A stretch of 64,000 bases of DNA from sequence record LR756504.1; one strand, given 5' to 3'. This document shows, one piece after another, positions 9,913-63,507 of this stretch. A program made the translations under genes and the position numbers. A model generated the notes under the pieces. That model did no database searches. It saw nothing but the letters and a program-made list of their open reading frames with translations, and had not been told where the DNA came from. Every line of letters begins with the position of its first letter. The stretch's first letter is position 1.

Positions 9913-10182
9913 ATGCGAGATAGATGTTGGAGAAGACATACAGAAGATAAAAAAGTGCTTAAAAGACTCAAAAACTCAAGAATTTATCAGTTTTATGTCT
10001 ATTACCCACACTTCTGTGTACATACTATAAAATGGTATAATTTAATAGGAACACCAACGCATCACTTATATAAAACAACTGTTTCTAAGTATAAAAATAA
10101 GTGGAGGTGGGATAATAAGTATTATAGAACATCACATAAACAAGAATTTATTAACACATTAAAATATGAAGGAGTTTTATAG
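9913..10182 (+). CDS. Hypothetical basic protein
   Basis: 89-aa ORF overlapping the start of the next ORF. Confidence 0.5.
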   Translation: MRDRCWRRHTEDKKVLKRLKNSRIYQFYVYYPHFCVHTIKWYNLIGTPTHHLYKTTVSKYKNKWRWDNKYYRTSHKQEFINTLKYEGVL

Positions 10183-10714
10183 CTTTGAAGATTTTATTAT
10201 ATTTTGGTTAGAAAATCCAAATGGTAGTTTTACATTTAAAAAATATCATACAAATAAAAATATGTTATACATTAGTAATATAGCATTACTACCATTAGCT
10301 AGAATAACAGAGAATGTAGTTTATTTAGATTTTTCTATAATACATAAAAAAGCAATAAAGCTTATAATACCTATTTTTAAAAAATTGAATATCGAATTTT
10401 ATTTAGTTAGAAATTTTACTAAGTTCCATTTAAACAAAGATGAATTTTCTATTAGATACGAAGATTTAGATAACATGTTAGACAATTATATCAATAAAGA
10501 ATTCTATGATTTATTTAAAATGATTGAATTTGATATACAAATGCACATATTTAATTATATCAATACTTTTAATTGTCATTCATCATGGGAACAAATAAAT
10601 AATGAGAGGATTAAAAAAATAAAGAATAATAGTTATAGAAATATTGATAAAGAAATTGTGTCGGAAATATTATCACTTGATAGAAATTTTAAGATTTTCT
10701 CATTATTAATGTGA
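10166..10714 (+). CDS. Hypothetical protein with C-terminal RxxKIxxLL motif
   Basis: 182-aa ORF ending DRNFKIFSLLM. Confidence 0.6.
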   Translation: MKEFYSFEDFIIFWLENPNGSFTFKKYHTNKNMLYISNIALLPLARITENVVYLDFSIIHKKAIKLIIPIFKKLNIEFYLVRNFTKFHLNKDEFSIRYEDLDNMLDNYINKEFYDLFKMIEFDIQMHIFNYINTFNCHSSWEQINNERIKKIKNNSYRNIDKEIVSEILSLDRNFKIFSLLM

Positions 10715-10744
10715 ACGAATAATATAGAAAATAACAAAAGTCTA

Positions 10745-12586
10745 TTATGCACTCGGTTGTATAATAATTTCATCTCTTTCCCACACCCATTTAATATTTC
10801 CAGAATTCCAATACCTATACATACTAATATCAGACATAATTTGCTCTTCTGTTAATTTCGGATCAAATCCCATTTTAATTAATTTACCTTTAAAAAAATT
10901 AAATCTATGATGCCTTTTCATATATGCATCTATATAATAATAACCAGGTTTTGTAACACCATTGTCATCAAAACCTAAATTTGCATAAAAACCAACTCCC
11001 CAATTATTATCAGAGTATGATATTATACGCTTAACTTCTACCGCATTTAAAAAATGTTTAAATAACTTGGATGCTCCACCAACTACGGTTGTGTATTTTT
11101 TATTACAAAATCTTATTAATTCAAAATTACCCTCCACTCTTTCATGATTCATAAATTTTCTTAAACCACAAAATGACATAATTGACACAAGTTCATCATT
11201 ATAAAATAATCCATATTTATATTTACTATGCGCATATCCTTGAATATGATTTTCCTCTAGAAATTTTCTATATTGATTATTATTAAGTTCTCTAATTATT
11301 GTTTTTCTTGCCCAAATTTTTTCATTACTTTTACATAATAAATTATGTAATCTAGACATTATAATATCTTTTTTATTATTCCACTCATCTTGCCATATTT
11401 GTATTAATTTAATACCAAGTTCTCTACAATGTTTAAATTTATTTATATGATATTGCGTACTTTTAAAATCCTCATTGTGGTAATACATACCATTACATTC
11501 AATGGCAATATTTAATTCAGGTATATAAATGTCCAATTCTTTAGGTTTTATAATACTCCTATTACTTGATATAATTTCACCATTGTAAATTGATTTGACA
11601 TATTCCAATACTTTTAATTCAAAATCTGAAGAACTTTTAGGATTATTACACACTGTACATAATGCATGCATATCTTTAAATCTATTTAAAAATAATCCTA
11701 ATGAAATTCTGAAAGATTTATGTTCACATCTACTATTATTAGTAATGTCGAAAAAAATACTATAATTATTACTATTATAAATACCTCTATTTATATTTGA
11801 TATGTCTATATTATAGACAGTTTTCATTTTTTCTATTAATTTTAAATTAAAAGTGTTTCTAAAGTTTATTCTAAAATTTTCAACACTTTTAGCTCTATTA
11901 ATAATAGATTTTTTCTTTATCCCATCATTCAACATGGGATATTCAACACCATATAATTTTTTACTGGTTATCTTACATTTTTCGTAAATATTTTTGTTTG
12001 ACCAGGGATGTTCAACACCGTACTTTTCATTACTAGTATTTTTATAAGATTCTTTCCAACTATCAATATTTAATTTAAAAGAATTTATTCTTTTTTCTAC
12101 AAAATCTGGATTTTTACTAGGATTATCATATCCAAAATTAATTAAATTTGTAGATTTTCTTTTTTCATTTATTTCAGTTTGTTCATCCTGTGTTCTATTT
12201 TCTAATTTAGATTTAAACATCATCATCTTATCTTCATTAAAAATCGCATATTCAACACCATATTTTTCAATATTGGTATTTTTCCTCTTATTCATTATTT
12301 CATCAGAAGAACTTTGACATTTATTAGAACAATACCTTAAATATCCTAAAGTTTTATTTTTGAAATTTGTTTTATTGTTGCATTTAGAATTATTACAAAC
12401 TCCTACAGTTTTTAAATCGTGTATATACAGATAAACTCGCTCTTTAAATGGAATTTCATACAAATCATAGATTTTTGTATAATTTATGATTTCATCATAA
12501 GCATCTTTATTATTGGTTAAAATCCATTTTTCTTTTGATAGTTTACCATTGTTATCAGGTTGATCTAAAAATTCTTTTGTAGTCAT
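10745..12586 (-). mobile_element. Free-standing Hef-like homing endonuclease gene, copy 1
   Basis: N-terminal YCS..C and (K)YG(V) repeats, CTVC, ELDIYIPELNIAIECNG.YYH nuclease motif, C-terminal NHIQG...ELIRFC...GGASKL domain. Confidence 0.7.
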
Positions 12587-12623
12587 AATAATATTATATT
12601 ATGTTATTAATAAAAAGTTTTAA

Positions 12624-12658
12624 AAATAAAGGGGAATATAAATTATTCCCCTTTATTT
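12624..12658. terminator. Intrinsic terminator after the sheath gene
   Basis: aaataaaggggaata-taaat-tattcccctttattt. Confidence 0.8.
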
Positions 12659-12662
12659 GAAT

Positions 12663-15600
12663 TTATCTAAAACCACCCGCTGCAATATCACCAGTTTTTA
12701 ATATTGTGATGTTGTTAACAATAATTCCCATACTTTTTACTGGTTCTACAAAAGTATCAAGCACGCCAATTTGTGCATCTATAATATCAGGAGTATTGTT
12801 TGTTTCGTCTATTACGTTGAAGAAATCGTATAAACCATTATCTCTAACATATCTTTGACAGATAGCATCAGCTTTAGCTTTAATTTCTTCTCTAACATCT
12901 TTAGTGTTAAATCTCCATTGATAAGTTAATAACATTTGGTATAATTCTTCTTCAAGTTCTACTAACACTTCTCTCACGTGAATGTAAGATAATGCTGAAC
13001 GTGGAGAAACTTGTGCAGTATTATCAGTTTCTATACAAAATCCTCTGTTCATTTTATAAACAATAGGGTTAGCATTCATTAAGTTTAAATTTTCAATGTC
13101 ATCTGGAGTTAAGTCCATTTCAACATTTCCGAAACCCGTTAAGAATCCATTTGTTAAACCCGCTGCAACAGTCCAAGGTTTAACAGATGCTAATCTTATT
13201 ATATGTTTTCTCATAAATGTATTAGCAACAAATGAAGATGGTGGTACATCTATTGGTCTACCATTATCATCAAGTGAAACGTGCGGGAAGAAATAACCTA
13301 CGTTTGATTGACCTTTACCTTGTCCGAATTCATATAAGAATGATGGACTCGACTCAGGATCACCACCTAATCTTATGAATTCAGTATTTAAAGTTTTATC
13401 AGAATTTATAAATATAGTAGATGTACTATTTTTAAATGCTTTAGCAGATGGCATATTTAATATACCAAAACATGTTAATTTATCACCACAAAGATCAACT
13501 AATTGTTGTTTTGAATTTGATGTTAAACCATTGCTCCATGGATCTACTAAATATCTCCAAGTAATTTTATTTCTATTAATTAATCCTTTTGATAAAGGAG
13601 TTCCTGGTGCAAGAACATCAAGAATATCACTTTGTCTTTTCTCGGAATTATCAGGCATTGAATCAGCCCTCATTTTAAATCCACCTAAAACTATAGCATT
13701 ATATGTATTTACATAAGATTCCATAGCTGTAAATCTGAATGTTTGCAAATCAGCACCAAATGATAATACATCAATTTGAGCATCAGTTGTAATTTCAACT
13801 AATGTTGGATCAGCAGCATAAAGTTTTTTACCTACTATTCTTGTGAGCTTTTTACCAATTTCACCTGTTTGTAATAAATCATCATTAACAAATGCTTGTA
13901 AATAATCGCCAATTTTAACACCATTATATCTAGCGCTATTGATTAAAACTTTATTAGTTGCTAATACAGCTTCTATTTCTAAACTTTCTTTAAAATTATT
14001 TCTCTTAGAGAATATTTTTATTGATTCGAGATTGAATGTGTCTGATATAGTAACAGGATTAAATAATTTATCAGAATATTGTACTGTTAAATTACTCCCA
14101 ATAAAATACATTTTCAAATATGTTATATCGGAATCATTAGCACCATGAATAGTAACATTACCATTTAATACTGCTTCAGTTTTTATTAATTCATTTACAA
14201 TAATGTCTAATTTTAAGTTGTATGTTCTTCCGTTAAAATTATATAATGGTTGTGATGAAGTATTAGTATCTGTTAATGTCATGTTAAGAACAGTGAATAT
14301 TTGATCATTACCAACTGAACCGAATAATCTTATTTTTCCAGACATTAATCCATGAACAATGCTATCAGCATCATTATAATATAATGTAATTATATCATTA
14401 CCACTCACTCTTTTGAACTCAACGTCGGGGAACTCATGGAAATATAAGTTAGGGAAGAAATAATCACCAGAATTAATCATACCATCTTTATATGATTTAT
14501 ATAGAGATGAATTAGAAGAAACAACACCATATCCAGAAGATGATGATGTAGGCTCAGTTTTAGTACCAGCTGGATCACCAGTGCTAGATCTAAATGTTAA
14601 TTCATCGTCCACAAAGAAAATCTCAGGTGTACCTGAAGTGCTTGTGTTAATATTAATTGATGGTGCAACAACAATTGTTACACTTTTATTATCAGAACCA
14701 TCTGTTCCAAATGTAATATCAGTAAGAATTATCTTTTGATTAGATACATTTTTAATTATAGAAATACCTGCTTTTAATTTAGATTGTAATTGATTGAATA
14801 TTGCTAATAATCTAGTTTTTCTATAGTTAAAATCACTATCAGAATTTTTAGTACCTGTAAATACAAATTCTATTACATTAGAAGATGCGTTATTAATACC
14901 ATAACTTATCAATATATCAGCAGAGTTTGTACCATTTGATACTTCGAAATCAATTGCACCTAATACTTGTATTGGCGCGGTAATACTTAATGTACCACTA
15001 GAACCTTGGCTACCTATATAAACTATTGCTACAGGTAGAACACCTGATGCAAGTGGTTTTAATGGCACATCATCCCATTGTGTTTGATTAGACACCTCGA
15101 ATCCATGCTCAACACCTAAATTACCATTAGCATCAAAGTATAAAGTATCTTTTCTAATTTTTCCAATTACAACATCATTAACTAAAATACTATTATTTAA
15201 AGCGTTGACTTTAACACCACTTAATATATAATTAAGAGATGTTGGAATTAAATTAATTTCAGAAGAATTAACTCCTGTAGTAATTAGAAAATCTGTAAAA
15301 GCTAAAGAACTTAATATTTTACCTTCATGATTAACGCCTTCGTGTCCAAATGCATTTCCAGCTCTATCAAGAACTTGTTCGGTAAATGTTAAATTTTCAC
15401 TAATAGATTCTTTATAAGATAAATATTCAATTGTTTCAGTATCTTCATCAACTAAATTAGAACCAATTAAGTCCAATAAACCTTTTGAATAATCAGATCC
15501 TTCTACAGCATCAATATCATATGCTACAAAAACACCAGTAGTATCAGTATCTCTATTAACTACAGTTTCAATGAAAATATCTCTACTATTAGCATTGTTA

Positions 15601-16409
15601 GCTTCTGCTTTGAAATAAGGTATTATTGATAAATCTGAATATATTTTTAATACATTTACTGATGGATCATTATAGAAATTAGCTATTTGATCTTTTCTCA
15701 AACCATTTGGATTAAAATATCTTGACCATTTAGTATCTACTGATAATGTTTTATAATCTGACCAATCACCCGAAACGACAAGCATAGAAACAACGTAATC
15801 CGATGCTAAATCCGATGGATGTAAATAAGGCGGAACTTTTGATTTTCCACCATACCAAACTTCTAATGTTTCATCATAACCTCTTGCAGTAGATTTAAAT
15901 AAGAAAACAGAAACTTTTCTATCACTCATATTTGTAATATGAAAGATATGTCTATTATCAGTTATATTCTCTTTTGCTACTGACAAGAAAGAATCAGTGT
16001 CTCTATACCAGAAATCAGATTTATTGAAAAATTTTGAATAAGCAGATTTTTTAACAATATCATTAGCAACATTTGATGCAACAGAAACAGTCTTCCATTC
16101 TAATAAATCTAAATCGTCATCTGTTTTTAATAAGTTTAATGCCCACACTGGACCATTACCTAAAATGTTAAGAATAGTTCTATGGAAAAAACAGCCTTTT
16201 TTCTCTAAAAATCTATCAATGTCTCCAAAAATTTCAATCAACTGTTGTGGATTTTCTATGAAAATAGGTCTATTTACAGGTCCTTTTCTAGAAAAGCCAG
16301 GAACAAGATTTATTAATGTAGTTTGCGCAGGAATCTGTCTAACTGAGGCATCAATTTCCCTGATATAAATACCAGGTCTTTTAAAATCTGCAATATTAAT
16401 GTTAGCCAT
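12663..16409 (-). CDS. Contractile tail sheath protein (gp18-like), unusually large
   Basis: N-terminal RPGIYIREID...GPVN; C-terminal PPS..VA, W...AG...G, YIHVREVL, FNVIDETNNTPDIID sheath motifs. Confidence 0.92.
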   Translation of the reverse strand: MANINIADFKRPGIYIREIDASVRQIPAQTTLINLVPGFSRKGPVNRPIFIENPQQLIEIFGDIDRFLEKKGCFFHRTILNILGNGPVWALNLLKTDDDLDLLEWKTVSVASNVANDIVKKSAYSKFFNKSDFWYRDTDSFLSVAKENITDNRHIFHITNMSDRKVSVFLFKSTARGYDETLEVWYGGKSKVPPYLHPSDLASDYVVSMLVVSGDWSDYKTLSVDTKWSRYFNPNGLRKDQIANFYNDPSVNVLKIYSDLSIIPYFKAEANNANSRDIFIETVVNRDTDTTGVFVAYDIDAVEGSDYSKGLLDLIGSNLVDEDTETIEYLSYKESISENLTFTEQVLDRAGNAFGHEGVNHEGKILSSLAFTDFLITTGVNSSEINLIPTSLNYILSGVKVNALNNSILVNDVVIGKIRKDTLYFDANGNLGVEHGFEVSNQTQWDDVPLKPLASGVLPVAIVYIGSQGSSGTLSITAPIQVLGAIDFEVSNGTNSADILISYGINNASSNVIEFVFTGTKNSDSDFNYRKTRLLAIFNQLQSKLKAGISIIKNVSNQKIILTDITFGTDGSDNKSVTIVVAPSININTSTSGTPEIFFVDDELTFRSSTGDPAGTKTEPTSSSSGYGVVSSNSSLYKSYKDGMINSGDYFFPNLYFHEFPDVEFKRVSGNDIITLYYNDADSIVHGLMSGKIRLFGSVGNDQIFTVLNMTLTDTNTSSQPLYNFNGRTYNLKLDIIVNELIKTEAVLNGNVTIHGANDSDITYLKMYFIGSNLTVQYSDKLFNPVTISDTFNLESIKIFSKRNNFKESLEIEAVLATNKVLINSARYNGVKIGDYLQAFVNDDLLQTGEIGKKLTRIVGKKLYAADPTLVEITTDAQIDVLSFGADLQTFRFTAMESYVNTYNAIVLGGFKMRADSMPDNSEKRQSDILDVLAPGTPLSKGLINRNKITWRYLVDPWSNGLTSNSKQQLVDLCGDKLTCFGILNMPSAKAFKNSTSTIFINSDKTLNTEFIRLGGDPESSPSFLYEFGQGKGQSNVGYFFPHVSLDDNGRPIDVPPSSFVANTFMRKHIIRLASVKPWTVAAGLTNGFLTGFGNVEMDLTPDDIENLNLMNANPIVYKMNRGFCIETDNTAQVSPRSALSYIHVREVLVELEEELYQMLLTYQWRFNTKDVREEIKAKADAICQRYVRDNGLYDFFNVIDETNNTPDIIDAQIGVLDTFVEPVKSMGIIVNNITILKTGDIAAGGFR

Positions 16410-16541
16410 TATAATGATACTTTATTTTGTTTATATATTAAAATCTATATGCCAAAAATATCAATATAATCATTTTTAATAGGGTACTTATTCAAACTTA
16501 TCCTTAATGCGTAGTATAATACTGTGTAAAATAATAGATAT

Positions 16542-17363
16542 ATGAGAAATTTTTTTAAAATAAAAAGTATAAAACAATTTAAACTGTTCATAAAAAATAC
16601 AAAAATGAATAGTATAATTAAAGAAGATTTTCTAAAGTTGAAGGAATTTGCACCTTATAATAGCGAGAAGATAAATGAATTGAAAGATTTAAGAAAACTT
16701 GGTTTATATGTTTCTGAGTTAGTTACTTTGGAAATTTGGGAAAAACAAAAAGATATTAAAAAGAAAGTCTTAGCTGATTTTATGTATTTTAAAAATAGAT
16801 ATCCCGACTATTCGTATATTAGTGAAGACACACTGAATAATCTTCTAATCGAATACAATATTACTAAATCAAAAACAAATTCACATAAATTTAGTCTAAA
16901 TAATAGAGTTAGAACAAATTTAATGAATTTTAATTTAGATGATAGTGATGTTCATTTTTATATAGAATCTACTATATCATTTTGGTCAGCCTATAGTAGT
17001 ATAAGTAACTCATCCTACACACTAAGGTACATTAAACAAAATCCAACATCATTTACTCAAATAAATGAAAGTACTTATACATCAAATAGTGTAAATTATA
17101 ATAGGGATACCATGTATATTTTATATAGCCCACTTTATTCCGATTATATTATACTTCACCCAATATCAAGAGAAAGTAGAAAAGGCTTTTTAATAGTTGC
17201 AACATCACATGATATTAAAAATGAAATCAAAAATAGAACTAATGTAAATAATCGTGATGATAATATGACCACTCTTATAGAAGGGATAAAAGTAAAAAGA
17301 GGAAAGGATTTATCAGAAAATTTAACTGATGAAGAAATAATGGAATTGATAGATAGTCTATAA
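16542..17363 (+). CDS. Hypothetical protein
   Basis: 273-aa ORF between the sheath and terminase genes. Confidence 0.6.
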   Translation: MRNFFKIKSIKQFKLFIKNTKMNSIIKEDFLKLKEFAPYNSEKINELKDLRKLGLYVSELVTLEIWEKQKDIKKKVLADFMYFKNRYPDYSYISEDTLNNLLIEYNITKSKTNSHKFSLNNRVRTNLMNFNLDDSDVHFYIESTISFWSAYSSISNSSYTLRYIKQNPTSFTQINESTYTSNSVNYNRDTMYILYSPLYSDYIILHPISRESRKGFLIVATSHDIKNEIKNRTNVNNRDDNMTTLIEGIKVKRGKDLSENLTDEEIMELIDSL

Positions 17364-17382
17364 TTTTTTGATATATAATAAG

Positions 17383-20795: not shown

Positions 20796-21077
20796 TTATC
20801 TTTTTTTAATCCACTCTACAAAGTTATTTATTAGTTCATTTGATAAAAGAAGTTCTTTAGTATTATAATATTTTCCTAATTCTTTTTCGTCTATAAAACG
20901 ATGTATATTAGAATGACAATCTTTACAAAGCATCAAACCATTTGTTCTCATATCACACTTTTTGAAATTTTTTAAGAACCATTTATTATTATGTAAAGTT
21001 TTAGGTATTAGATGATGGAATGATAAATTTCTCTCTCTTTCACACAATTCACATACGTTAATATTTTTATTCACCAT
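20796..21077 (-). CDS. Small HNH endonuclease
   Basis: CELC...HHLIP...LCKDCHSNIH. Confidence 0.85.
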   Translation of the reverse strand: MVNKNINVCELCERERNLSFHHLIPKTLHNNKWFLKNFKKCDMRTNGLMLCKDCHSNIHRFIDEKELGKYYNTKELLLSNELINNFVEWIKKR

Positions 21078-21330
21078 TCAATTCTTCTATTTTCATTTGT
21101 CTGAAAATTCCATTTAATCCTGTAAATTTATTATTTATGAATATTTTTTCATCTGTAATAGTACAAACCAAATGTTGGGATGCTCTGTAATCATTACAAT
21201 ATATTTTAATCATATTTGGTTCAATAATAGTTCTTACATTATAATATTTTATACTAGTGATATAAGAACGTATTATTTCATCATATTGATTATTTTTGTC
21301 ATGTAAAAATATAGTAAATAATCCTTTCAT
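21067..21330 (-). CDS. Hypothetical protein with C-terminal RQMKIEEL motif
   Basis: 87-aa ORF tightly coupled to its neighbours. Confidence 0.6.
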   Translation of the reverse strand: MKGLFTIFLHDKNNQYDEIIRSYITSIKYYNVRTIIEPNMIKIYCNDYRASQHLVCTITDEKIFINNKFTGLNGIFRQMKIEELNGE

Positions 21331-25900: not shown

Positions 25901-26248
25901 ATGTTTCTTAAATACTATCAAATAATCATCAACTTATTTAAAAGTTTATCAATACCAATCTATAGAATCAAAATAGAGCATTCTAAATTGGATAGTAAAT
26001 ATTTTCCACAATATAAAAAATATGGTATATGGATATTTTTTTACGAAACAAAAACAGTTGGATATTCTTCAACAACTAAATATACAGAAATAGTATCATT
26101 TTCAACCGAAAATAAAGCAAATATTTTTATTTTAAATTCAGAAAAAAATAGAGTTGATGTAATACAGAAAAAAATTGATTCTAAGAAAACTGTTGAATAT
26201 AAAAGAATCTATTTAAATAGACAAGAAAAAATAAAAAATCTTATATAA
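25901..26248 (+). CDS. Hypothetical protein with C-terminal RQEKIKNLI motif
   Basis: 115-aa ORF whose stop overlaps the rnhB ATG. Confidence 0.6.
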   Translation: MFLKYYQIIINLFKSLSIPIYRIKIEHSKLDSKYFPQYKKYGIWIFFYETKTVGYSSTTKYTEIVSFSTENKANIFILNSEKNRVDVIQKKIDSKKTVEYKRIYLNRQEKIKNLI

Positions 26249-26820
26249 TGCTCAGAGAAATGGAAGGAATAGATTTTTTATGTGGAACAGATGAGTCTGG
26301 CGTTGGTTGCTTGGCTGGTCCCGTCATTGCATCTGCTGTAATATTACCAAAAGATTACTATAATAAAGATTTAAATGATAGTAAAAAAATGACAACTAAA
26401 AAACGTGATATTGTTTATAACGATATTATAAAAAATGCAATAGAATATTCAATAACAGAGGTTGATATTCATACAATTGATAAAATTAATATTTTATGGG
26501 CTAGAATAATGGCTATGGATTTAAGTGTTAAAAAACTTATTAATCCACAATATTTATTAATAGACGGTAATAAATTTTATAAAGAATATCACATACCATT
26601 TGATACTATAGTAAAGGGTGATGGAAAATGGGCTTGTATAGCAGCAGCTTCTGTATTAGCTAAAGTGTACAGAGATGAATTAATGTTAAATTTACATATT
26701 AAGTTTCCGCAATATAATTGGAGTTCTAACAAAGGATATGGTACTAAAGAACATTATAAGGCTATTGAATCTAATGGAATAACTGAGTTTCATAGATTAT
26801 CTTTTCTTAAAAATTTGTAA
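26248..26820 (+). CDS. rnhB: Ribonuclease HII
   Basis: GTDESGVGCLAGP, LNDSKK, LIDGN, KGD, AASVLAKV.RD, KGYGT..H, HR.SF. Confidence 0.95.
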   Translation: MLREMEGIDFLCGTDESGVGCLAGPVIASAVILPKDYYNKDLNDSKKMTTKKRDIVYNDIIKNAIEYSITEVDIHTIDKINILWARIMAMDLSVKKLINPQYLLIDGNKFYKEYHIPFDTIVKGDGKWACIAAASVLAKVYRDELMLNLHIKFPQYNWSSNKGYGTKEHYKAIESNGITEFHRLSFLKNL

Positions 26821-27684: not shown

Positions 27685-28059
27685 CTAATCTAATAATATT
27701 TTTATTTTTTCATCCCTAATTTTAGACTTTGGAAGTTTAAAAACAATATTTGTCGGAATATTAATAGACTGTTTTCCAAATTCAGGTATAATAATTTCTA
27801 CTTTTTTCCATAAAAAATTAATATCTATCATTTTTATTGCATATACTCTACTTAAAGTTCTTATAGGATTATTTAATCTTTGTAAATTACAAGCAGAGAA
27901 ACAATTATCTTTGTATTCACAAGTTATTTTTAAATTATAATCTTTTTTTATTGTTAATGTACCATCATTGGATGTTATATTAACATGATATTTCAACACA
28001 ATCTTCTTGTAAGATATTTTTCTGACTACTATTTCCATATAACTATTATATAATTTCAA
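27685..28059 (-). CDS. Hypothetical protein with C-terminal RDEKIKILL motif
   Basis: 124-aa ORF. Confidence 0.55.
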   Translation of the reverse strand: MKLYNSYMEIVVRKISYKKIVLKYHVNITSNDGTLTIKKDYNLKITCEYKDNCFSACNLQRLNNPIRTLSRVYAIKMIDINFLWKKVEIIIPEFGKQSINIPTNIVFKLPKSKIRDEKIKILLD

Positions 28060-28090: not shown

Positions 28091-28378
28091 ATGGGAGAGA
28101 TAACTATAAAAACTTCATTAATTGATTATATCGGAGAATTAAATGGTGGTGTATCTATAGCTATAAGTCTAACTGTTGAAGATGATTTTAGTTTTGAATC
28201 TATTTATTGGATACACCCTGATGGTAAATATTTATTAGAAACAGATGACAATTTTTTAAAATTGTTTGGAATAAGCGATTCGAACGATTTACCATTTATA
28301 AATGAATTAATTGTTGATATAGATTCTATATTAGCTAGTAAAGAAGAAATATTTGAAACTTTTTTAAATGGAAACTAA
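28091..28378 (+). CDS. Hypothetical acidic protein
   Basis: 95-aa ORF. Confidence 0.65.
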   Translation: MGEITIKTSLIDYIGELNGGVSIAISLTVEDDFSFESIYWIHPDGKYLLETDDNFLKLFGISDSNDLPFINELIVDIDSILASKEEIFETFLNGN

Positions 28379-28532
28379 AAATAATACAGTAAGAAAATTA
28401 CGAGTAACATGGACTCCTTTTGTCTACGATTTTGTGGCGAATCCTGGATTTAGTGATGCTATGTTTAAATCACAAAAAGAAGATGTTATAAAAAGAAGAA
28501 ATAGACTTATAAAAATTTTTAATATGTCTTAA
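28368..28532 (+). CDS. Small hypothetical protein (54 aa, not in ORF track)
   Basis: METKNNTVRKLRVTWTPFVYDFVANPGFSDAMFKSQKEDVIKRRNRLIKIFNMS; start overlaps the upstream gene end. Confidence 0.5.
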   Translation: METKNNTVRKLRVTWTPFVYDFVANPGFSDAMFKSQKEDVIKRRNRLIKIFNMS

Positions 28533-34571: not shown

Positions 34572-36248
34572 ATGATTGAAGATTTAATAAAAGAAATATT
34601 AAGTGATACGAGTAGAAAAATGAATGAAAATTTCATAAAGAAAACAGAAATTTATGATTCATTAATGGTATATAAAAAAAAATATAACTTCGATGGATAT
34701 TCTTTCGGTGAGGTGTTCTATCATTATATAAACAAATTAGAACCTATTAAATGTTCTAAGGACTATTGTAACAATAAACCTACATACGAATCCATATTTA
34801 GAGGATATAGAAANNNNNNNNNNNNNNNNNNNNNNNCAAACGATAAAGAGTGGAGGGACAAAGTTGAGAAAACTAATTTAGCTAAATACGGTGTAAAAAA
34901 CCCATTTCAATCAAAAGAAATACAAGAAAAAATAAAAAAAACATTAATAGAAACATTAGGTGTTGATAATCCATCCAAATGTAATATTATTAAAGAAAAG
35001 ATTGAAGTAAGTAAAAGTAAATTAAATCAAGACGACATTAATAAAAAGAGAGAGGATACTTGTCTGATTAAATATGGTCAGTTTAATGTATCACAATCTA
35101 AAATAATAAAAGATAAAATTAGCAATAAAACTAAAAAAAATTGGATAGATAAAAAACTTAAAAATAAAGTTAGAAAATCCACATATCACAAATTAAATAG
35201 AATTAAATTATTAGAATCTTGCAATTTATCTTTAATAAATTACGATGATGAAACAGACATTATATCAGTAATTAGTAATAAATGTAATCATAGTTTTGAT
35301 ACTAGAACCAAAACCATATCAAATAGAAAATCTAATAATGTTGAACAGTGTTTAATATGTACCCCATTAAATAGCTTTAAATCTACTCCAGAAACAGCAA
35401 TATATGAATTTATTAAAGAAAATTATAATGGTACTATTATAAGGTTAAATAAATCTATCTTGGATGGTAAAGAATTGGATATTTATTTACCAGAACTAAA
35501 TTTAGCATTTGAGCATAATGGTTTGTATTGGCACTGTGAAAAATATTACAATAATAAGTATCATATGGAAAAAACAAACAATTGCTTAAAAAAAGGAATT
35601 AAACTAATACATATATGGGGGGATGATTGGATTTATAGAAAAGATATAGTTAAATCTAGAATTTTAAATTTACTAAATAAATCCAATAGAATATGGGCTA
35701 GAAAATGCATTATAATGAATATAAATAATAAAGATGCTAATATTTTTTATTCACTAAATCATATTCAAGGAAATATAATGGCATCTAAATATAATGTCGG
35801 ATTATTTTATAATAATGAATTAGTTTCTTTAATGTCTTTTGGCTCATATCGAAAAAATTTAAATCATAAAAAGAAAGCTAATTCTTATGAATTGACAAGA
35901 TTTTGTAATAAAATAAATACTTCCGTAATTGGCGCAGCATCTAAATTATTTACATATTTTGTAAAAACGTATGATCCATTAGAGATATTAAGTTGTGCCG
36001 ATAGAAGTTGGAGTAATGGTGATTTATACGATAAAATAGGTTTTAACTTTTTGCATAATACCAAAGAAAATTATTATTATATTATAGATGGTATGAGGCA
36101 GAATAGATTTCTATTTCAAAAACATAAATTAGTTAAAGAAGGATTCGACAAATCTAAAACAGAACACCAAATTATGTTAGATAGAAAAATATTTAGAGTA
36201 TATGATTCGGGTAGTAAAATATACATATGGAATAAAAAAGGGAGTTAA
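34572..36248 (+). mobile_element. Free-standing Hef-like homing endonuclease gene, copy 2, antisense between portal and protease; spans an N gap
   Basis: YGVKNPFQ/LGVDNPSK repeats, CLIC, ELDIYLPELNLAFEHNG.YWH, NHIQG, ELTRFC, GAASKL; TATAAATA at 34562-34569 before the ATG at 34572. Confidence 0.7.
34814..34836. other. Assembly gap (23 N)
   Basis: Run of n in the sequence. Confidence 0.99.
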
Positions 36249-37963: not shown

Positions 37964-38011
37964 TTTTACTTTCTACTTTTTTCTACTTTATATATTAAAA
38001 ACACATTCTTC

Positions 38012-48170: not shown

Positions 48171-48545
48171 ATGAAACATATAAATAACTTCAAATCTGTC
48201 AATAATAAAAGCAGATTGAATAAAGATACAACTGAAGAATCTAAATTAAGAGCTTCTTATAAAGAACGTATTGAAAAGTTTATGAATACTTTTTCTGACA
48301 ATCCTGAACATTGGGGTAAAGCTACTAGTGAGTTACCTGATATACATCATCGAATGTCCGATACATACAATGAATTTGTAAATGAGGGGGAAATAGATGG
48401 TGATATTTATACTGGTTATGAAGGACGCAGTAAAACACCAAAAGAATATATCACTAAAGCAAAAAGAGGTATACGCTATTTATCAGATAGACTACCTATA
48501 TACTTATTAAAAGATATAATTAAATTTTATGAAAGTTGGTTTTAA
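48171..48545 (+). CDS. Hypothetical protein
   Basis: Start MKHINNF; TATTTTTG promoter box at 48150-48157. Confidence 0.6.
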   Translation: MKHINNFKSVNNKSRLNKDTTEESKLRASYKERIEKFMNTFSDNPEHWGKATSELPDIHHRMSDTYNEFVNEGEIDGDIYTGYEGRSKTPKEYITKAKRGIRYLSDRLPIYLLKDIIKFYESWF

Positions 48546-48733
48546 AAATCTAAATCAATATCATATTCAATAATAGTATCTTTATCACATTCTATACAAG
48601 AAAATATAGCGCAAGAAGAAAAATATTCAATTGATGTTCCTGTATCATCGGCAATAAATTTAATACCATATTCATTGGTATCACCATTATTTTTTATATT
48701 ATTTGATCCACATTTTGGACAAAACTTTACCAT
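48542..48733 (-). CDS. Small zinc-ribbon protein
   Basis: CPKC...CIEC. Confidence 0.65.
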   Translation of the reverse strand: MVKFCPKCGSNNIKNNGDTNEYGIKFIADDTGTSIEYFSSCAIFSCIECDKDTIIEYDIDLDF

Positions 48734-48736: not shown

Positions 48737-49057
48737 TTATTCTTTAGTATTTTCTTTGTCTTTATTCAATCCTTGTAAGAAGATTAAATAATTAATTGCA
48801 TCTGTTATTCTACTTTCAATAGGTTCTGATTGCGAAGCACCATCAGTCTTAATATAATGATAAATAGCATCTATGTGTTTTTTTAAACCAAATCCTAAAT
48901 ATTTTTCTGGTGCTACATCAAATGATTCTCCACCGTGTTTAAAAGCATATAACATATCTACATTTCCTTTAGTATAATCCTTACCTTTAGTATCTGTTAA
49001 TTGGATACATTTTTTAATAAGGTCTTTTCTCATTTCATTAAACTCTTCTGCTTTCAT
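48737..49057 (-). CDS. DUF1599/Nmad1-like all-alpha nucleotide-processing protein
   Basis: K..DY, K..R/H, E.I..RI.D.INY pattern. Confidence 0.6.
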   Translation of the reverse strand: MKAEEFNEMRKDLIKKCIQLTDTKGKDYTKGNVDMLYAFKHGGESFDVAPEKYLGFGLKKHIDAIYHYIKTDGASQSEPIESRITDAINYLIFLQGLNKDKENTKE

Positions 49058-49749
49058 AATAATTCTTCTATTTTATTTTTTCTAAATACTTTACTTGGTA
49101 AATCTACAGATATTACCATATCTGAATCTTTTGCTATTATAGCAAACATTGTAGTAAAAGTTTGGTTGCCATTATCAATATTTTTATAAACTAAACATAC
49201 ATTACCATGTGATATAGTATCATTTGATACATTGGTAAAAATCATTTTATTTCTAGGTAAATTATTATTTATAGTTACATTAATATTTAATAATTTATGT
49301 ATATTAAAATCAAATTTATTATAAATATAATCTTTAGCATCAATATGTAAAGAAATATTTGTTATATTATTATATCCAAATCCTATTTTAGATGCTTTGA
49401 GTTTAACTTCAAGATAAGCCATTTGCATAAGATGATGAAATGTACCAATTGATTTTTTTGTTGAACTCTCTATTGGTGGTACTATTTCTCTAACTGATGA
49501 TGTAATTGTTTCAAAATTTTTTATATGTTCCCATACGAAATATTTTAATTGTTCTTCTATTTCTTCAATTGTACCAATTACGCTATTTGTTAAATTAACA
49601 TTAGTACTTGCTAAATGCATTGAAAAATTATTTAAACCATGTGAGCCTTCTTCCACACCATCTACAATTTCTAAATAATAATACTTAGGTACGATTTCAT
49701 CAGCAATATTAAAAATATTAATACCAATATTATTAGGATTTAAAATCAT
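49054..49749 (-). CDS. Hypothetical protein with C-terminal RKNKIEELL motif
   Basis: 231-aa ORF. Confidence 0.6.
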   Translation of the reverse strand: MILNPNNIGINIFNIADEIVPKYYYLEIVDGVEEGSHGLNNFSMHLASTNVNLTNSVIGTIEEIEEQLKYFVWEHIKNFETITSSVREIVPPIESSTKKSIGTFHHLMQMAYLEVKLKASKIGFGYNNITNISLHIDAKDYIYNKFDFNIHKLLNINVTINNNLPRNKMIFTNVSNDTISHGNVCLVYKNIDNGNQTFTTMFAIIAKDSDMVISVDLPSKVFRKNKIEELL

Positions 49750-52331: not shown

Positions 52332-52523
52332 CTATTCGTCTAAAAGTTGATTGATAATTTCTGTTCTATTTAAATATAAATCATCTTGATGTATTATAAG
52401 AATTCCTATTTCTGTAATTATGGAGCAATTATCATCAAAAGTGTAGTGGCTGAATATAGCAGGTACATTATCTAATGTGCATTTAACTTTAACCAGATCG
52501 CCTCTTTTAAATTTTCTATTCAT
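52332..52523 (-). CDS. Small hypothetical protein (SH3/KOW-like) with C-terminal RTEIINQLL
   Basis: FKRGDLVKVK start; 63 aa. Confidence 0.5.
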   Translation of the reverse strand: MNRKFKRGDLVKVKCTLDNVPAIFSHYTFDDNCSIITEIGILIIHQDDLYLNRTEIINQLLDE

Positions 52524-55024: not shown

Positions 55025-57184
55025 TTATTCGTCTTTAACTATAATTTGTTTCACTTTTCCGTTCGACACCGATATCGGACATTCTACACTATTCGAAATA
55101 ATTAGAACTTTACCTTTTATTTTACCTAAATTTAGATTATCGACGTAGCCATCAGTAATTAAAAGTGTATTAAATTCATTATATTTTTCCGCAATTAATT
55201 CAAATGCTGGATTAATCACAGTTCCACCACCACCCTTCGGCACAACTCTCTGTAGTTCTGCCATAGACTTAACGTTTTCTACAGAATGCACTTTTGTATC
55301 ACAGAAGATAAGATTTATTTCAATATCACTTCTAAATATAAAGGATAATGCTTTACTGTAATAACCACTCATAGAACCAGATGTATCGAGAATACAGTTT
55401 ATCTTAGCACCTAATTTTTTATTACCTTTTAACCCAGATATACCTTTACGGTTAGGTCTTGTAATAGATTTAGTTTTTACATGTCCTTTTATAAATGATA
55501 CACCTCTCTTAATTTCTTTAAGATAATCTTTCTTCTTTTTTTGAAGTTTTTCAAGAGTTCTTTCAATATCACCTGAAATCAAACCACGTGCTTTTAATTT
55601 TTCTTGAACATCTTTAACCATCTGTTCTCTCAATTCATCAGGTACACCATCTTGAATATGTGAATCTAAAAATTGTCCACCATTTTCATCTATATCCCTT
55701 AGAATATCTTCTACGCTATGACATTCTTGGTCATTTTTACCATTTTTGCCATATCCACTCTTATTTCCTTGATTTTCCGAATTTGCATCTGATCCACCTC
55801 CCATATTATCATCTTGAGATTTATCAAATTTATATTCAATGCGTCTATTTATACCCCTTTTATATTCTGATTTAAGCAATTTCTTATAAGTAGCATATTC
55901 TGGATTGTTGGCTACTTCTGCTCTTAGAATAGCAAGTGTATTATCATCAGTATCATTTTCAATAATTAATTCTGTATCCCCTTTACCTGATGCTTGAATC
56001 AAATTATTAGCAAGTCCAATAATTGTAGTCTTAGACTGTGCCATATTAGGTAGTGTAAGTCCTTTAACTCTCAAAATATTTCTAAGAGTATTTTCGTCCA
56101 TTTTATCCAATTCGGTAAAGCGATATTCTTTAAAAAGCATATCTATTTTATCACCTTGTTGACCATCTTCAACTTTTTTTAGTTCAACTTCTCTTTGTTT
56201 TTGTACTGTTTTATTTGCAATTTCTTCATATTTGAAAATAAATTCTAATTTATCATTTTCAGATTGGGTGGCTTCTTGTTCCATAATTGCCATACATAGT
56301 GTATATTTATCTATGTACATGTCAATATTTTCAATTACAGCATTTTTAAATAAATTAGCTCTTCTTTCTGATAAATCTTGATTATAATTAGCAGGAGAAC
56401 CATCAGGTATGAAACTATCAGTGTGTCCTATTACTTGGAAAGGAATACCTTGTTGCAAAGAAACTAATGCCTTTCTAGTAAAATTACCAATATATTTTTC
56501 ATACTCAGTTTTACTTTTTTCTATTAGAATGTCAGTAAAAATGGCGTGTTGTCCGTGATATTTTGTAGTCAATTCTATATGAGTTGGTCTATCTTCTTTT
56601 ACAAATAGTTCTCCAAATATTCTATTATCTTCTTTCTTTTGCTTTCTTTTTACAAATTCTTCTTTTCTACCTTTAAGGTAATCATATAGAATTTCAAATA
56701 CCCATTCACCCTCGTATTCTTTTGGTATAAATAATGCACTATTTCTACCAAAATGATCTTTTGGTATATCTACGAAATCGGGTTTAATATCTTGGATAAT
56801 AATCTGATTAATAATCATATCCTGTGCGATATTAGATAGCTCGTGATCAAATCCACCCATCCTAGTTCTTCTAGGGTGATTTAAAAGTAAATGGAAAAGC
56901 TCGTGTATATTCAAAAAATTTACTTGTTCTTGAGTTAGTTTGTCAATAAACTCAGGATTGTAGTAATAATTCATACCCTTCGATGTTACATTTACACCCG
57001 CTGTTTGTAGTTGTGGATCATTTGGGCGACAAAAGAAATTAACATGTAGTAAAAATTCACCATAATAAGGTAAATTTATTTTAGAATTTAACAACATCAT
57101 TTCAATGTTGTGTATGATTTTAGGGTGAAGTTCTGATGTTGCTACTGACATGCTATATTCCTCTTTATTTATACCTTTTATCAT
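55025..57184 (-). CDS. DUF2201-type metallopeptidase-vWA protein with inserted OmpA-like domain
   Basis: TAGV, HELFH (HExxH), NIAQD..IN; IGHTD, N..LSERRA, NRRIE; LDTSGSMS, GGGT, TDG. Confidence 0.8.
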   Translation of the reverse strand: MIKGINKEEYSMSVATSELHPKIIHNIEMMLLNSKINLPYYGEFLLHVNFFCRPNDPQLQTAGVNVTSKGMNYYYNPEFIDKLTQEQVNFLNIHELFHLLLNHPRRTRMGGFDHELSNIAQDMIINQIIIQDIKPDFVDIPKDHFGRNSALFIPKEYEGEWVFEILYDYLKGRKEEFVKRKQKKEDNRIFGELFVKEDRPTHIELTTKYHGQHAIFTDILIEKSKTEYEKYIGNFTRKALVSLQQGIPFQVIGHTDSFIPDGSPANYNQDLSERRANLFKNAVIENIDMYIDKYTLCMAIMEQEATQSENDKLEFIFKYEEIANKTVQKQREVELKKVEDGQQGDKIDMLFKEYRFTELDKMDENTLRNILRVKGLTLPNMAQSKTTIIGLANNLIQASGKGDTELIIENDTDDNTLAILRAEVANNPEYATYKKLLKSEYKRGINRRIEYKFDKSQDDNMGGGSDANSENQGNKSGYGKNGKNDQECHSVEDILRDIDENGGQFLDSHIQDGVPDELREQMVKDVQEKLKARGLISGDIERTLEKLQKKKKDYLKEIKRGVSFIKGHVKTKSITRPNRKGISGLKGNKKLGAKINCILDTSGSMSGYYSKALSFIFRSDIEINLIFCDTKVHSVENVKSMAELQRVVPKGGGGTVINPAFELIAEKYNEFNTLLITDGYVDNLNLGKIKGKVLIISNSVECPISVSNGKVKQIIVKDE

Positions 57185-57366: not shown

Positions 57367-57385
57367 ATTATGCTAAAATGCATAA

Positions 57386-58651: not shown

Positions 58652-58740
58652 TGAATTGAATTATATTTTTAGTATATATAAAATATCATATTTTACTTTT
58701 TACACGATGATACTCACAACTTTACCTTAATTATCAACTA

Positions 58741-59406: not shown

Positions 59407-59457
59407 AAAGTATATATTTATTTTAAAGTCAAACAAAATGCACTTTTATCTAATAAA

Positions 59458-61366: not shown

Positions 61367-61674
61367 TAATATGTTTTATGTTTTCTTTGGATATTTTTAC
61401 CATCATCTAAATCATCACCTCTAAATTTAGCTTCTACTAAATTAACTATTTTTTGATCAATTTCATCAATTAATTGATTTCTTTGAACATTAAGGTCACA
61501 TGCTTTTTTTAAACCCTCCCATAATAATTCAGCACCTTTTTCATCTGCGAAATATTTAGTTTTATACTCATCAAATGTCATTCTTCTGATTTCATATAAC
61601 AATTCTTGATTATCCCACATTTTCATATCAACTGTTATGAGTTTGTCCATTAAACTTCCTAAAGTGTCTGCCAT
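61366..61674 (-). CDS. DUF4254-like helical protein
   Basis: TLGSL.DKL.....K.W, LN.QRN.LI.EID; start MADT at 61674. Confidence 0.7.
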   Translation of the reverse strand: MADTLGSLMDKLITVDMKMWDNQELLYEIRRMTFDEYKTKYFADEKGAELLWEGLKKACDLNVQRNQLIDEIDQKIVNLVEAKFRGDDLDDGKNIQRKHKTY

Positions 61675-61691
61675 AGTTTTATATTTATTTT

Positions 61692-62294
61692 TTATTTTAT
61701 TATTTTTGTAGCAGGTATTCCAACATAAACACCTGGTTCGATTATACTTTTTAAAACACATGCACCTGCTCCTATAGTTGAATCAGATGTAATGTTTATT
61801 CTTTCTTTTGATGATGACCCTGTACCAAAATATACTCTATCTCCTATTAAACAATTACCACTTATATGAACACCTGGTGCAGTGGTAAAATAATCACCTA
61901 TAATACAATCATGTCCTATAGTAGTAGCTAAATTCAATTGTACAAAATCTCCTATTTTTATATCTGCTGTTATTATACTATTTGCACATATAACAGCACC
62001 CTTACCTATTTGTATATTTAAAGATGATATAACAGCATTTGGATGAATTAGTGAAATCCATTCAACATTTGGATTTTCTCTTACTATTTTTTCTCTTATT
62101 TTTGGAGAACCTATACCTAATACACCGTAATGTTTATACGTATCGTAATATTCAACTGTTTTTACTGGTAATCCTAAAATATCACTATTTTCTTTAACAT
62201 CTATAAAGGCATCTACGATATATTTACAATCAAGTGCTAATGCATACACTTCTTTAGCAAATCCACCTGAACCAAAAATACATATTTTTTTCAT
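61692..62294 (-). CDS. NeuD/PglD/PerB-family sugar acetyltransferase
   Basis: IFGSGGFAKE, LIHP.A, hexapeptide repeats, IGHD, GIPA. Confidence 0.92.
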   Translation of the reverse strand: MKKICIFGSGGFAKEVYALALDCKYIVDAFIDVKENSDILGLPVKTVEYYDTYKHYGVLGIGSPKIREKIVRENPNVEWISLIHPNAVISSLNIQIGKGAVICANSIITADIKIGDFVQLNLATTIGHDCIIGDYFTTAPGVHISGNCLIGDRVYFGTGSSSKERINITSDSTIGAGACVLKSIIEPGVYVGIPATKIIK

Positions 62295-62299
62295 GTATA

Positions 62300-63190
62300 T
62301 TAATTATTTTTTATAACTGACGCTATAACATTAAAAATATCTTGATAAGAATTCATATTGCGACTATGTAATATTTTAGCCGTTCTTTTTTCATACCAAT
62401 TTGTTATAATATTATTATAACTAAAACTCAAAAAAGTTTTGTCAGGATTTAGTATATTTTCTTTTATATAGCAAAATGTATATGTTCCTGAATCTCTTCC
62501 TATAATAATATTACATTTTAATGAAATATATGAATTTTCATTTAAGTCATTTTCTGATGATTTAATAATATCTTCCGTATAGAAAACATTGCTTTCATTT
62601 ACAATATTCCCCATTTTATTACTTAATAAGAAGTTATGTTCTGGAAATGTTTTAGATAGTTGTAATATCAGTGGATTAAAATCAAAATTAAATGATTGCC
62701 CAGATAAAGTATTACCATTTGATATTAAAATACATGGATTGTTCTTTTTATTAAAAAATTCATCTATATGTTCAGTTAAACATTTACTAAAATCTATAGA
62801 TGGTAAAAATGTTTGTTCATCAAAATCATTAATATTTATTCCAAATATTTCTTGAAAATAAAAACCAAATAGATTGTATAAACTAATAAATGTGCATTCT
62901 TGAAAAAATTTTCTATGTCCTGAACAATACCAAGTATTTATATAAATAGTATCATCTACTTTTTTATATGACATTAATTCTTCTTGAATAATAGTATTAT
63001 TTTTTATATCATTGGGTAAGAATGTTAAATTCAAATCTTTTGTTAAATTACTATCATTTTTATGTGTATAGAAATAATTGAATTGTGGAAATTTATCAAT
63101 AATAAATTTTAAAAATCCTCTTGAAACATGCACATCACCATTATGAAAATGATTAAAGAATACTATATTTTTTATATTATCTAAAATCAT
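62300..63190 (-). CDS. Putative glycosyltransferase
   Basis: HNGDVH.SR N-terminus, IGRDSG C-terminal motif (GT-B/GT9-like); cluster context. Confidence 0.5.
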   Translation of the reverse strand: MILDNIKNIVFFNHFHNGDVHVSRGFLKFIIDKFPQFNYFYTHKNDSNLTKDLNLTFLPNDIKNNTIIQEELMSYKKVDDTIYINTWYCSGHRKFFQECTFISLYNLFGFYFQEIFGININDFDEQTFLPSIDFSKCLTEHIDEFFNKKNNPCILISNGNTLSGQSFNFDFNPLILQLSKTFPEHNFLLSNKMGNIVNESNVFYTEDIIKSSENDLNENSYISLKCNIIIGRDSGTYTFCYIKENILNPDKTFLSFSYNNIITNWYEKRTAKILHSRNMNSYQDIFNVIASVIKNN

Positions 63191-63507
63191 ATGATACCAT
63201 CTATTTTTCTTTTTCTTTGTTCTGCTTTAGCAATATTAAATATATCTTTTTGATTTATATTAATAATTTTTATTTTTTTAAAATATTCATTAAAATTTTC
63301 ATCAAAGATTTTAAACTTGATTTCAAATGTATTTAAATCAATATATGATGTATTAAGTTTAATAATATTAATATTAGACAATTCACGAATCATAATACTA
63401 CTTGGGCTTACCATTAATAACACATCATCATATATAAAACATTTACATTTCTCATCAGTAGTTCCAAAATATGTTAATTTACTAACATCTATATTATCTA
63501 TTTTCAT
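63187..63507 (-). CDS. Hypothetical protein with C-terminal RKRKIDGII motif
   Basis: 106-aa ORF. Confidence 0.55.
   Translation of the reverse strand: MKIDNIDVSKLTYFGTTDEKCKCFIYDDVLLMVSPSSIMIRELSNINIIKLNTSYIDLNTFEIKFKIFDENFNEYFKKIKIININQKDIFNIAKAEQRKRKIDGII

Follow-up and report, generated by a model that had tools for sequence, protein, structure and literature searches.

A conserved C-terminal peptide on unrelated small proteins of the huge phage genome LR756504.1 and its possible role as a common recognition tag

Short terminal peptides by which different proteins are brought to a single partner have been described in several systems. The tails that bind the gp45 sliding clamp in T4 and RB69 and the PCNA-interacting-peptide (PIP) boxes are short hydrophobic peptides at the extreme C-terminus by which several proteins dock on one hub. 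The Clp degrons and tethers, such as ssrA, the ClpX C-motifs and the ClpX-binding tail of SspB, are terminal tags on unrelated proteins that are handled by one AAA+ machine, and the capsid-targeting sequence of T4 and the loading peptides of encapsulins are short terminal peptides on unrelated cargo that are read by a shell or core of the HK97 fold. Here we compare with these systems a C-terminal peptide found in a stretch of 64,000 nucleotides (the window), which is 100% identical to LR756504.1, the unannotated 636,363-base-pair (bp) genome of an uncultured phage. A preliminary description of the window had reported that seven unrelated small proteins end in a shared motif, R-x-x-K-I-x-x-(L/I)-(L/I), and had proposed that it is a common docking peptide or degron. 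We find that this tail is conserved at the amino-acid level, is bound to the C-terminus, sits on unrelated protein bodies, is kept in orthologues and has its own flavour in each lineage. On balance, it is somewhat probable that the tail is a tag read by one common receptor.

The assembly behind the window comprised 288,572 bp, which correspond to positions 89,861-378,432 of LR756504.1, and 313 genes were called in it; when the remainder of LR756504.1 was added there were 878 predicted proteins genome-wide. The stops in the assembly were TAA 248 times, TGA 33 times and TAG 32 times at a coding density of 91%, and LR756504.1 is read with the standard code. When the strict motif R..KI..[LI][LI] was searched in the 313 proteins of the assembly, there were 8 matches, of which 7 ended 0-1 residue from the C-terminus. 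The number of C-terminal matches expected was only 0.008 from the composition of the proteome and 0.025 from the composition of the tails, and in 20,000 shuffles of the last 15 residues 7 matches were never reached, the maximum being 2. Inside the proteins, on the other hand, 1 match was observed and 0.75 were expected. The comparison of C-terminal with internal and shuffled frequencies that the preliminary description had proposed thus shows that the motif is enriched at C-termini only. Two of the seven C-terminal matches (genome positions 86608-86952 and 159368-159712) lie outside the window, and since they were not used to define the motif they are an independent sample. An unbiased scan of gapped three-residue patterns placed R...I..L at the top in every part of the genome, with p from 1e-15 to 1e-91. 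The tail is therefore a real feature and statistically overwhelming.

Membership was scored genome-wide with a matrix made from the strict tails of the genome at a threshold of 10 bits. By this measure 115 of the 878 LR756504.1 proteins (~13%) carry the tail, compared to 0.56 expected from the internal match rate. Of these, 73 are located between 600 kilobases (kb) and 80 kb, that is across the ends of the record, and a looser pattern marks 64 of the 214 genes in the first 90 kb. Judged by the identity of the capsid protein, the closest relatives are LR745206 (52%), LR756502 (50%) and LR756501 (48%), and LR756500 (32%), the Lak phages (~30%) and Tenacibaculum phage PTm1 (27%) are more distant. 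LR756504.1 and its nearest relatives are the 'Mahaphage' genomes of PMC7162821, where Bacteroidetes hosts are predicted for genomes larger than 634 kb. In LR745206, 72-77 of 905 proteins end in [IL]-R-[DEN]-x-K-[IL]-[ND]-x-[IL]-L followed by 0-4 residues, and in the first 400 kb of LR756502 a tail of the R-[DEN]-x-K-[IL]-x-x-[IL]-L type is found on 40-45 of 561 proteins, so that the tail share is 6-8% of the proteins in these two genomes. About 13 proteins in the first 400 kb of LR756501 end in R-T-[KE]-L-I-D-[KE]-M-L. When the LR756504.1 matrix was applied to the relatives that lack the tail, it matched 1 of 520 proteins in the first 400 kb of LR756500, 0 of 298 in the whole of PTm1 and 0 of 195 in the first 220 kb of Lak-A1, which was translated with TAG as sense. 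LR756504.1 is from an uncultured phage, and the cultured relative PTm1 is without the tail.

The flavour of the tail differs between lineages. Position +1, counted from the Arg of the motif as position 0, is K in LR756504.1 and D, E or N in LR745206 and LR756502, and in LR756501 the tail reads R-T-x-L-I-D-x-M-L. A strict DNA pattern for R-D-x-K-I-x-x-I-L gave no match in LR756504, LR756501, LR756500, PTm1 and Lak-A1, and this flavour is therefore lineage-specific. The tag is thus a trait of the four largest genomes, which form one clade, with a flavour of its own in each lineage. It appears to be undescribed, since the motif is mentioned neither in the full-text literature searched nor in PMC7162821. 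LR756500.1 has a C-terminal motif of its own: about 12 proteins of 127-369 amino acids (aa) end in H-L-x-N-A-D-D-F-G-F-(F/L)-D-N (examples are at 11601-17016, 180972-181730 and 198758-199531), which may all be paralogues or else represent a tag of a second kind.

The proteins that carry the tail are small, with a median of 97 aa compared to 153 aa for the other proteins, and they are not enriched in hydrophobic segments. They are mostly found in tandem arrays of small genes without known relatives. When the tails were trimmed, the 238 bodies from all genomes fell into 210 BLAST clusters of which 196 were singletons, and among the six multi-copy families of LR756504.1 the hhalign probabilities were mostly <10%, with two pairs at 42-55%. 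The members are thus not a single paralogous family, for no whole-length similarity was found, and some true paralogue arrays occur within the class. In the window, phmmer searches with the trimmed bodies gave nothing significant, which bears out the earlier statement that there is no similarity outside the tails. Searches against PHROGs gave only four weak matches for 107 members and were unhelpful for the window members, for members outside the window and for ten larger members from the relatives. Among the bodies recognised by sequence are a helix-rich protein of 138 aa, a protein of 847 aa with WG repeats and two paralogues of parts of the major capsid protein, and the structural neighbours of the 63-aa window member place it among SH3/KOW-like barrels. 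The two capsid paralogues lie at about 472629-473165 and at 415901-416098 of LR756504.1 (L075:14197-14733 and L072:17469-17666). The larger one, of 178 aa, matches residues 121-285 of the capsid protein (E 3e-17) and the smaller one, of 65 aa, matches residues 82-107, including the conserved N-terminal segment L-P-[IV]-A...[LV]-V-[AS]-V-[KQ]-P. Within families the identity of the tail is 57-70% whereas that of the body is 29-50%. Orthologue groups that span different phages are few, and in them orthologues that are 25-41% identical keep a tail, mostly in the flavour of the genome in which they reside, as in ...IREEKIKAVL compared to ...VRDEKIDQILS.

The codons of the tail point to selection on the peptide. 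The synonymous codons at the R, D, K, I and L positions match the genome-wide usage except for Ile at +7, and the tail therefore does not behave as a repeated DNA element or a translated repeat. In the LR756504.1 tails Arg is encoded by AGA (89), AGG (16), CGA (5), CGC (1) and CGT (1), and the codons at +7 and +8 are TTA, CTA, CTT, TTG, ATA and ATT. The only synonymous bias found in the tail is that Ile at +7 favours ATA (41 compared to 26 expected and 20 compared to 12 expected in the tails of LR745206 and LR756502). When the rest of the motif was given, 80/85 and 88/100 tails had Arg at position 0 and only 2 and 1 had Lys, even though Lys is three times commoner than Arg. On a helical wheel R0, +1, +3, +4, +7 and +8 would lie within ~160 degrees and the variable +2 and +6 would lie opposite. 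Because the synonymous usage is that of the genome, because Arg is almost never replaced by Lys and because the conserved residues would share one helical face, selection acts on the amino acids of the tail.

The upstream sequences suggest when these genes are expressed. The motif (T/A)(A/T)ATATATA(A/C) was found ~30 nucleotides upstream of the sheath, tube, capsid and portal genes, with late-like sites preceding 16409 (sheath), 9854 (tube), 32279 (capsid) and 37963 (portal), and it is a putative late promoter. Each gene was assigned to the nearest upstream promoter on the same strand, with promoter classes predicted from sequence. With a looser definition of membership that takes in 167 genes, of which perhaps 20 are chance matches, only 10% of the members lie behind a late-type promoter compared to 33% of the other genes (odds ratio 0.23, p 6e-10). 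The class AAAC(T/A)(T/G)-N12-19-TA(T/A)AAT, in contrast, precedes 34% of the members and 12% of the others (odds ratio 3.7, p 3e-10). This class is also found before many small genes, the Nudix gene and the gene of ClpS, and a third upstream class is the Bacteroidetes-like TAnnTTTG.

The window has a G+C content of 26%. Its T4-like genes encode structural and packaging proteins (tail sheath, tail tube, large terminase, major capsid protein, prohead protease, portal) as well as a gp44 clamp loader, a protein similar to SbcC and a 5'-3' exonuclease. The tail-bearing genes and other features of the window are collected in Table 1. With the matrix at 10 bits exactly seven of the 65 genes called in the window are members. 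These are the seven that had been named before, all of which reach the threshold; two of them are variants, with no second hydrophobic residue in RQMKIEELNGE and with I in place of K in RTEIINQLLDE. The eighth, weaker candidate, RNRLIKIF, was rejected because it scores below 10 bits and is out of the register of the strict motif. All eight open reading frames (ORFs) translate as had been written and end in TAA, TGA or TAG, and as more in-frame stops follow shortly downstream the tails in the window are true C-termini under the standard code.

Table 1. Tail-bearing genes and other features of the window (positions are those of the window; a plus sign in a tail separates the motif from the residues that follow it)
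Feature	Position	Strand	C-terminal sequence	Remark
182-aa protein, no known relatives	10166..10714	+	RNFKIFSLL+M at 10682-10711	at least 10 bits; no PHROG match
87-aa protein	21067..21330	-	RQMKIEELNGE at 21070-21102 (variant)	at least 10 bits
115-aa protein	25901..26248	+	RQEKIKNLI at 26219-26245	tail reaches the extreme C-terminus
124-aa protein	27685..28059	-	RDEKIKILL+D at 27688-27717	
54-aa ORF	28368..28532	+	RNRLIKIFNMS at 28497-28529	not counted as member
Masked run, 23 N	34814..34836			within homing-endonuclease-like ORF; not part of the feature
ClpS homologue, 94 aa	47028..47312	-		ClpS signature; orthologue in related contig has Pfam PF02617 ClpS
63-aa zinc-ribbon protein	48542..48733	-	...EYDIDLDF	contrast to the R..KI..LL tail
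231-aa protein	49054..49749	-	RKNKIEELL at 49057-49083	
63-aa SH3/KOW-like small barrel	52332..52523	-	RTEIINQLL+DE at 52335-52367	
106-aa protein	63187..63507	-	RKRKIDGII at 63190-63216	

Some of these genes are found beside genes for nucleic-acid enzymes, as had been noticed; this holds in the window but is not a trait of the whole class. The gene of the 231-aa member overlaps with its start the stop of the 5'-3' exonuclease gene (FEN/RNase H-type), and the gene of the 63-aa member, which has no counterpart in a related contig that is syntenic here, precedes the gp44 clamp-loader gene by 13 nucleotides. In a search of 5.8 billion proteins the 231-aa member had a sole homologue, which is 64% identical, comes from another metagenome and retains RKNKIDELL, and the 63-aa member had none. 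A sequence search of the structure bank with the 231-aa member gave no match. The gene of the 87-aa member sits directly upstream of the Nudix hydrolase gene. The gene of the 124-aa member is followed by a hairpin-like stretch and then by a methyltransferase gene in the opposite orientation, and is therefore without a coupled downstream gene. The stop of the tail gene at 25901-26248 is overlapped by a gene for a 190-aa protein (26248-26820, +), which matches phrog_19422, a family of unknown function, with E 1e-52; it opens with G-T-D-E-S-G-V-G, which we take to recall RNase HII. Large genes similar to HNH or homing endonucleases lie amid the core genes at 10745-12586 (-), 39855-41807 (+), 55025-57184 (-) and 34623-36248 (+). 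The last of these contains the masked run of Table 1 and, at the written length of the gap, has one frame open on both sides. The gene calls and motif statistics of the assembly covered this place as well; it was masked in the scans of the genome sequence for promoters and transfer-messenger RNA (tmRNA), and the ORF was left out of the protein sets used for the clustering of bodies and later comparisons. As the nearest tail genes are >6 kb away the gap is irrelevant to the finding on the tails.

The best explanation of these data is that the tail is a shared recognition tag. This part of the earlier proposal of a common docking peptide or degron fits the selection on the peptide, the helical face, the Arg, the retention of the tail in orthologues whose bodies diverge and the separate flavours of the lineages, and its PIP-box or clamp form is unsupported. 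The tail is presumably helical and would dock on a partner, which is probably encoded by the phage because it would co-evolve with the tail. The tag would consist of ~11-13 residues at the extreme C-terminus, most likely as an amphipathic alpha-helix with a conserved face of R (0), K/D/T (+1), K/R (+3), I/L (+4) and L/I (+7, +8). It would sit on >100 small proteins that are unrelated to each other, evolve fast and do not belong to the late genes, and one common receptor would read them all. This receptor may be the ClpA-like unfoldase of the phage together with ClpP, and our guess is that the tail, as a degron or a tether, would then allow the early phage proteins to be cleared or processed jointly. 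Taken as one statement, a portable recognition helix whose common receptor is the phage Clp machinery is possible, but we would lean against it.

As the preliminary description had said, the phage encodes both a gp44 clamp loader and ClpS, and the genes of both are in the window. Beyond ClpS, the Clp set of the phage comprises a ClpX-like protein (412 bits), a ClpA-like protein (641 bits) and two or three ClpP proteins with the Ser and His motifs (283 and 237 bits for two of them), with loci at 37587-38744, 534578-536446, 291828-292400 and 370840-371409 of LR756504.1. An AAA+ protease of the kind that matches ssrA-like tags and ClpX motifs is thus available. The ClpX-like protein is without the N-terminal zinc finger, and the ClpA-like protein starts at the first ATPase domain and has no N-domain. 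Strong ClpA-like matches were found in all four genomes that carry the tail, none in LR756500 and PTm1, and a weak one in Lak-A1. A tail gene overlaps with its start one of the ClpP genes and is followed by more tail genes on the same strand. The tails of LR756504.1 mostly end in LL, LI or II. A phage tmRNA, looked for so that its tag could be compared with the tail, was not found in the examined stretches of the four genomes that carry the tail; LR756500 has one, with the tag GNNAEMRMAA. The ClpX-like protein was rejected as the common receptor because a homologue is found in Lak-A1, which has no tail, and none in the examined stretches of LR745206, LR756502 and LR756501. The evidence that phage Clp-type AAA+ machinery is the receptor of the tail is circumstantial, and we regard this identification as unlikely when it stands by itself.

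Several observations weigh against a tag with a common receptor or against its reading by Clp. The presence of the ClpX-like gene does not follow that of the tail, LR756501 gave no ClpP match and bears the variant tail, and the co-occurrence of the ClpA-like gene with the tail spans seven genomes of which the four carriers are each other's closest relatives, so that shared descent could explain it. In LR745206 and LR756502 the motif is followed by 1-3 residues that are mostly polar. Known Clp degrons are short and unstructured and have neither a conserved helical face nor an invariant Arg. No flexible linker precedes the tail and residues -6 to -1 are often hydrophobic, and the helix may therefore pack on its own domain. 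The structure models are too poor to call a free helix, as the AlphaFold2 predicted local distance difference test (pLDDT) was 34.6 for the 231-aa member, with an alignment of two sequences, and 49.0 for the 138-aa member, from a single sequence, both of which are unusable. The sole complex prediction gave no answer on the receptor: the 115-aa and 106-aa members were co-folded for tail-tail contact, and the score of 0.00, with the fold of the partner uncertain and without controls, counts neither way.

The rival explanations rank, in falling order, as self-association or a structural cap, virion loading, a by-product of nucleotide constraint, and clamp binding. Chance or composition in a genome of 26% G+C that is rich in K, I, L and N has a negligible probability. 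The tails are in general enriched in K (1.5x), R, E and I, but chance is refuted by the observed and expected counts, both in the assembly and genome-wide, by the 20,000 shuffles and by the two matches outside the window, and three relatives that are equally A+T-rich have 0-1 matches each. A constraint on the nucleotides, by which the conserved 3' end would be the translation-initiation region of the overlapping downstream gene (A-rich, ...TTATGA) and the peptide a by-product, would account for the fact that 44% of the members overlap the next gene on the same strand compared to 19% of the other small genes, that TGA stops are found in 31% compared to 13%, that 18.9% of the tightly coupled genes have the tail compared to 9.3% of the remaining genes, and that Ile at +7 prefers ATA. 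It is very improbable all the same. Since 49 of the 115 members are without a coupled downstream gene, translation initiation is not the main cause, and the synonymous codons are otherwise at genome usage, Arg is retained across AGR and CGN codons, and substitutions keep the hydrophobicity yet change the first base (TTA, CTA, ATA). The distance from the motif to the stop also ranges over 0-7 residues, and the period of the conservation is that of a helix and not of a DNA site.

The remaining rivals concern what the peptide would do. If the tail were a portable oligomerisation helix that pairs with itself or with other tails, or a C-terminal cap that packs on each small domain and stabilises it, there would be no separate receptor, and it is consistent with this that the tail directly follows the last hydrophobic strand without a linker, e.g. 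...HFITIAEYRKSIIEELL on SH3/KOW-like barrels, that in LR756504.1 the tail begins with the charges + +. + and has - - behind the Ile, an arrangement that would fit antiparallel pairing, and that the median carrier is of a size at which oligomerisation is common. However, bodies that are all-beta or all-alpha, or that measure 231 or 847 aa, conserve one face whose Arg does not give way to Lys, and packing on such different cores is therefore unlikely; ~12 residues are short for a stable coiled coil, and a genome-wide change of flavour between lineages is easier to explain by one shared partner. We consider the cap distinctly unlikely. A signal that brings proteins into the procapsid or tail for injection with the DNA is quite improbable. 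It would fit with the two tail-bearing paralogues of pieces of the major capsid protein and with the weak HK97/encapsulin-like neighbours of the 231-aa member (score 0.88, template-modelling score 0.45), which are a lead only, and a short terminal peptide common to unrelated cargo is how such systems are established to work; the tail, too, is a short terminal peptide on unrelated proteins. But cargo would be made with the shell, and the members are instead rare downstream of the late-type promoter, which was found before every structural gene tested (10% compared to 33%, as given above); most are in early-looking arrays, and 115 different cargo species would be unprecedented. Docking on the sliding clamp of the phage by a PIP-box-like peptide, as had been suggested from the register of the tail, is extremely improbable. 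The I-x-x-L-L spacing at the C-terminus loosely resembles clamp-binding peptides and a gp44 clamp loader is encoded beside one member, but the consensus R-x-x-[KR]-[IL]-x-x-[LI]-[LI] has no Q and no aromatic pair, aromatic residues being rare at +7 and +8, and the ~115 carriers are mostly in arrays of genes without known relatives and not beside replication genes. The T4-type DNA polymerase is the canonical client of the clamp. In LR756504.1 its C-terminal half terminates with ...LTFTLSLF, and the orthologues have ...VMDIFGGFK in LR745206 and ...VMDIFGGSGF in LR756502. Such ends are in the style of the tail of T4 gp43, and since the polymerase carries this style of tail R..KI..LL is unlikely to be the clamp peptide of the phage. 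No other LR756504.1 protein has the polymerase-style tail. A better candidate for a clamp tail is the acidic and aromatic C-terminus of the zinc-ribbon protein of Table 1, which is in the style of T4 clamp binding. A clamp gene was not located in LR756504.1 either with TIGR00663 (DnaN) or with phrog_223 (gp45).

Some further observations concern the replication genes. The T4-type DNA polymerase of LR756504.1 is split into two genes that are ~280 kb apart, at 256124-257341 (+) and 538040-539203 (-) (loci L106 and L107); the exonuclease or N-terminal half has 495-499 aa and the palm and thumb half, which bears ...LTFTLSLF, has 408 aa. The orthologue of the zinc-ribbon protein ends in ...DDEIGFDF, and the gene is near the FEN-type exonuclease and gp44 genes. 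A 217-aa neighbour was tried as a candidate for the clamp and rejected, as an atlas look-up gave a NERD/nuclease-like lead only.

In huge phages the small genes without known relatives number in the hundreds, and a tag on ~13% of them gives a handle for their study. The tail defines a functional class from sequence alone and predicts a single receptor, and it is a portable peptide that could be used in work on sorting or timed degradation in phage-infected Bacteroidota, the phylum to which the hosts are predicted to belong (PMC7162821). If it is true that the phage Clp machinery reads the tag, the virus would encode a system that controls how long much of its own proteome lasts or what becomes of it, of which we know no phage example. 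A wider idea, which we hold to be somewhat unlikely, is that the tail is an address code on the scale of the proteome in the largest known phages, in which >100 early or middle proteins (~13% of genes) carry a C-terminal helix for a phage-encoded reader. The reader could be the ClpA-like protein with ClpP, which would clear the early proteome on schedule or use the proteins as adaptors, or else it could be a compartment or loading system built by the phage, and tag and reader would co-evolve between phage lineages.

The tail differs from the described systems in several respects. The clamp peptides are built around aromatic residues (SLDFLFG, Qxx[ILM]xx[FY][FY]) and occur on a few proteins of replication and late transcription. 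The known Clp tags comprise 3-10 residues that are unstructured and show neither an invariant Arg nor the periodicity of a helix, and the ClpX-like protein of the phage lacks the zinc-finger domain by which tethers of the SspB type bind. The capsid-targeting signal of T4 is N-terminal and cleaved and its cargo is made together with the head proteins, whereas the carriers here are depleted behind late-type promoters. A likeness in form is seen in the MIT-interacting motif 1 (MIM1) of ESCRT-III, which binds the MIT domain of Vps4, and in the VCP-interacting and VCP-binding motifs (VIM and VBM) for p97. These are C-terminal amphipathic helices with essential Arg and Leu residues on one face, as the tail is predicted to be; they belong, however, to eukaryotic and archaeal systems, the ClpA-like protein of the phage is without an N-domain, and no MIT-like domain was found, although no search was aimed at one. 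In logic, the tail can be compared with the PRANC/F-box-like ends of poxvirus proteins and the C-terminal Dot/Icm signals of Legionella. The hosts, the machines and the sequences differ and the analogy is one of logic only, but there too many fast-evolving proteins, often in arrays near the genome ends, share only a C-terminal element that connects them to one machine, and these effector modules take up a similar share of the proteome.

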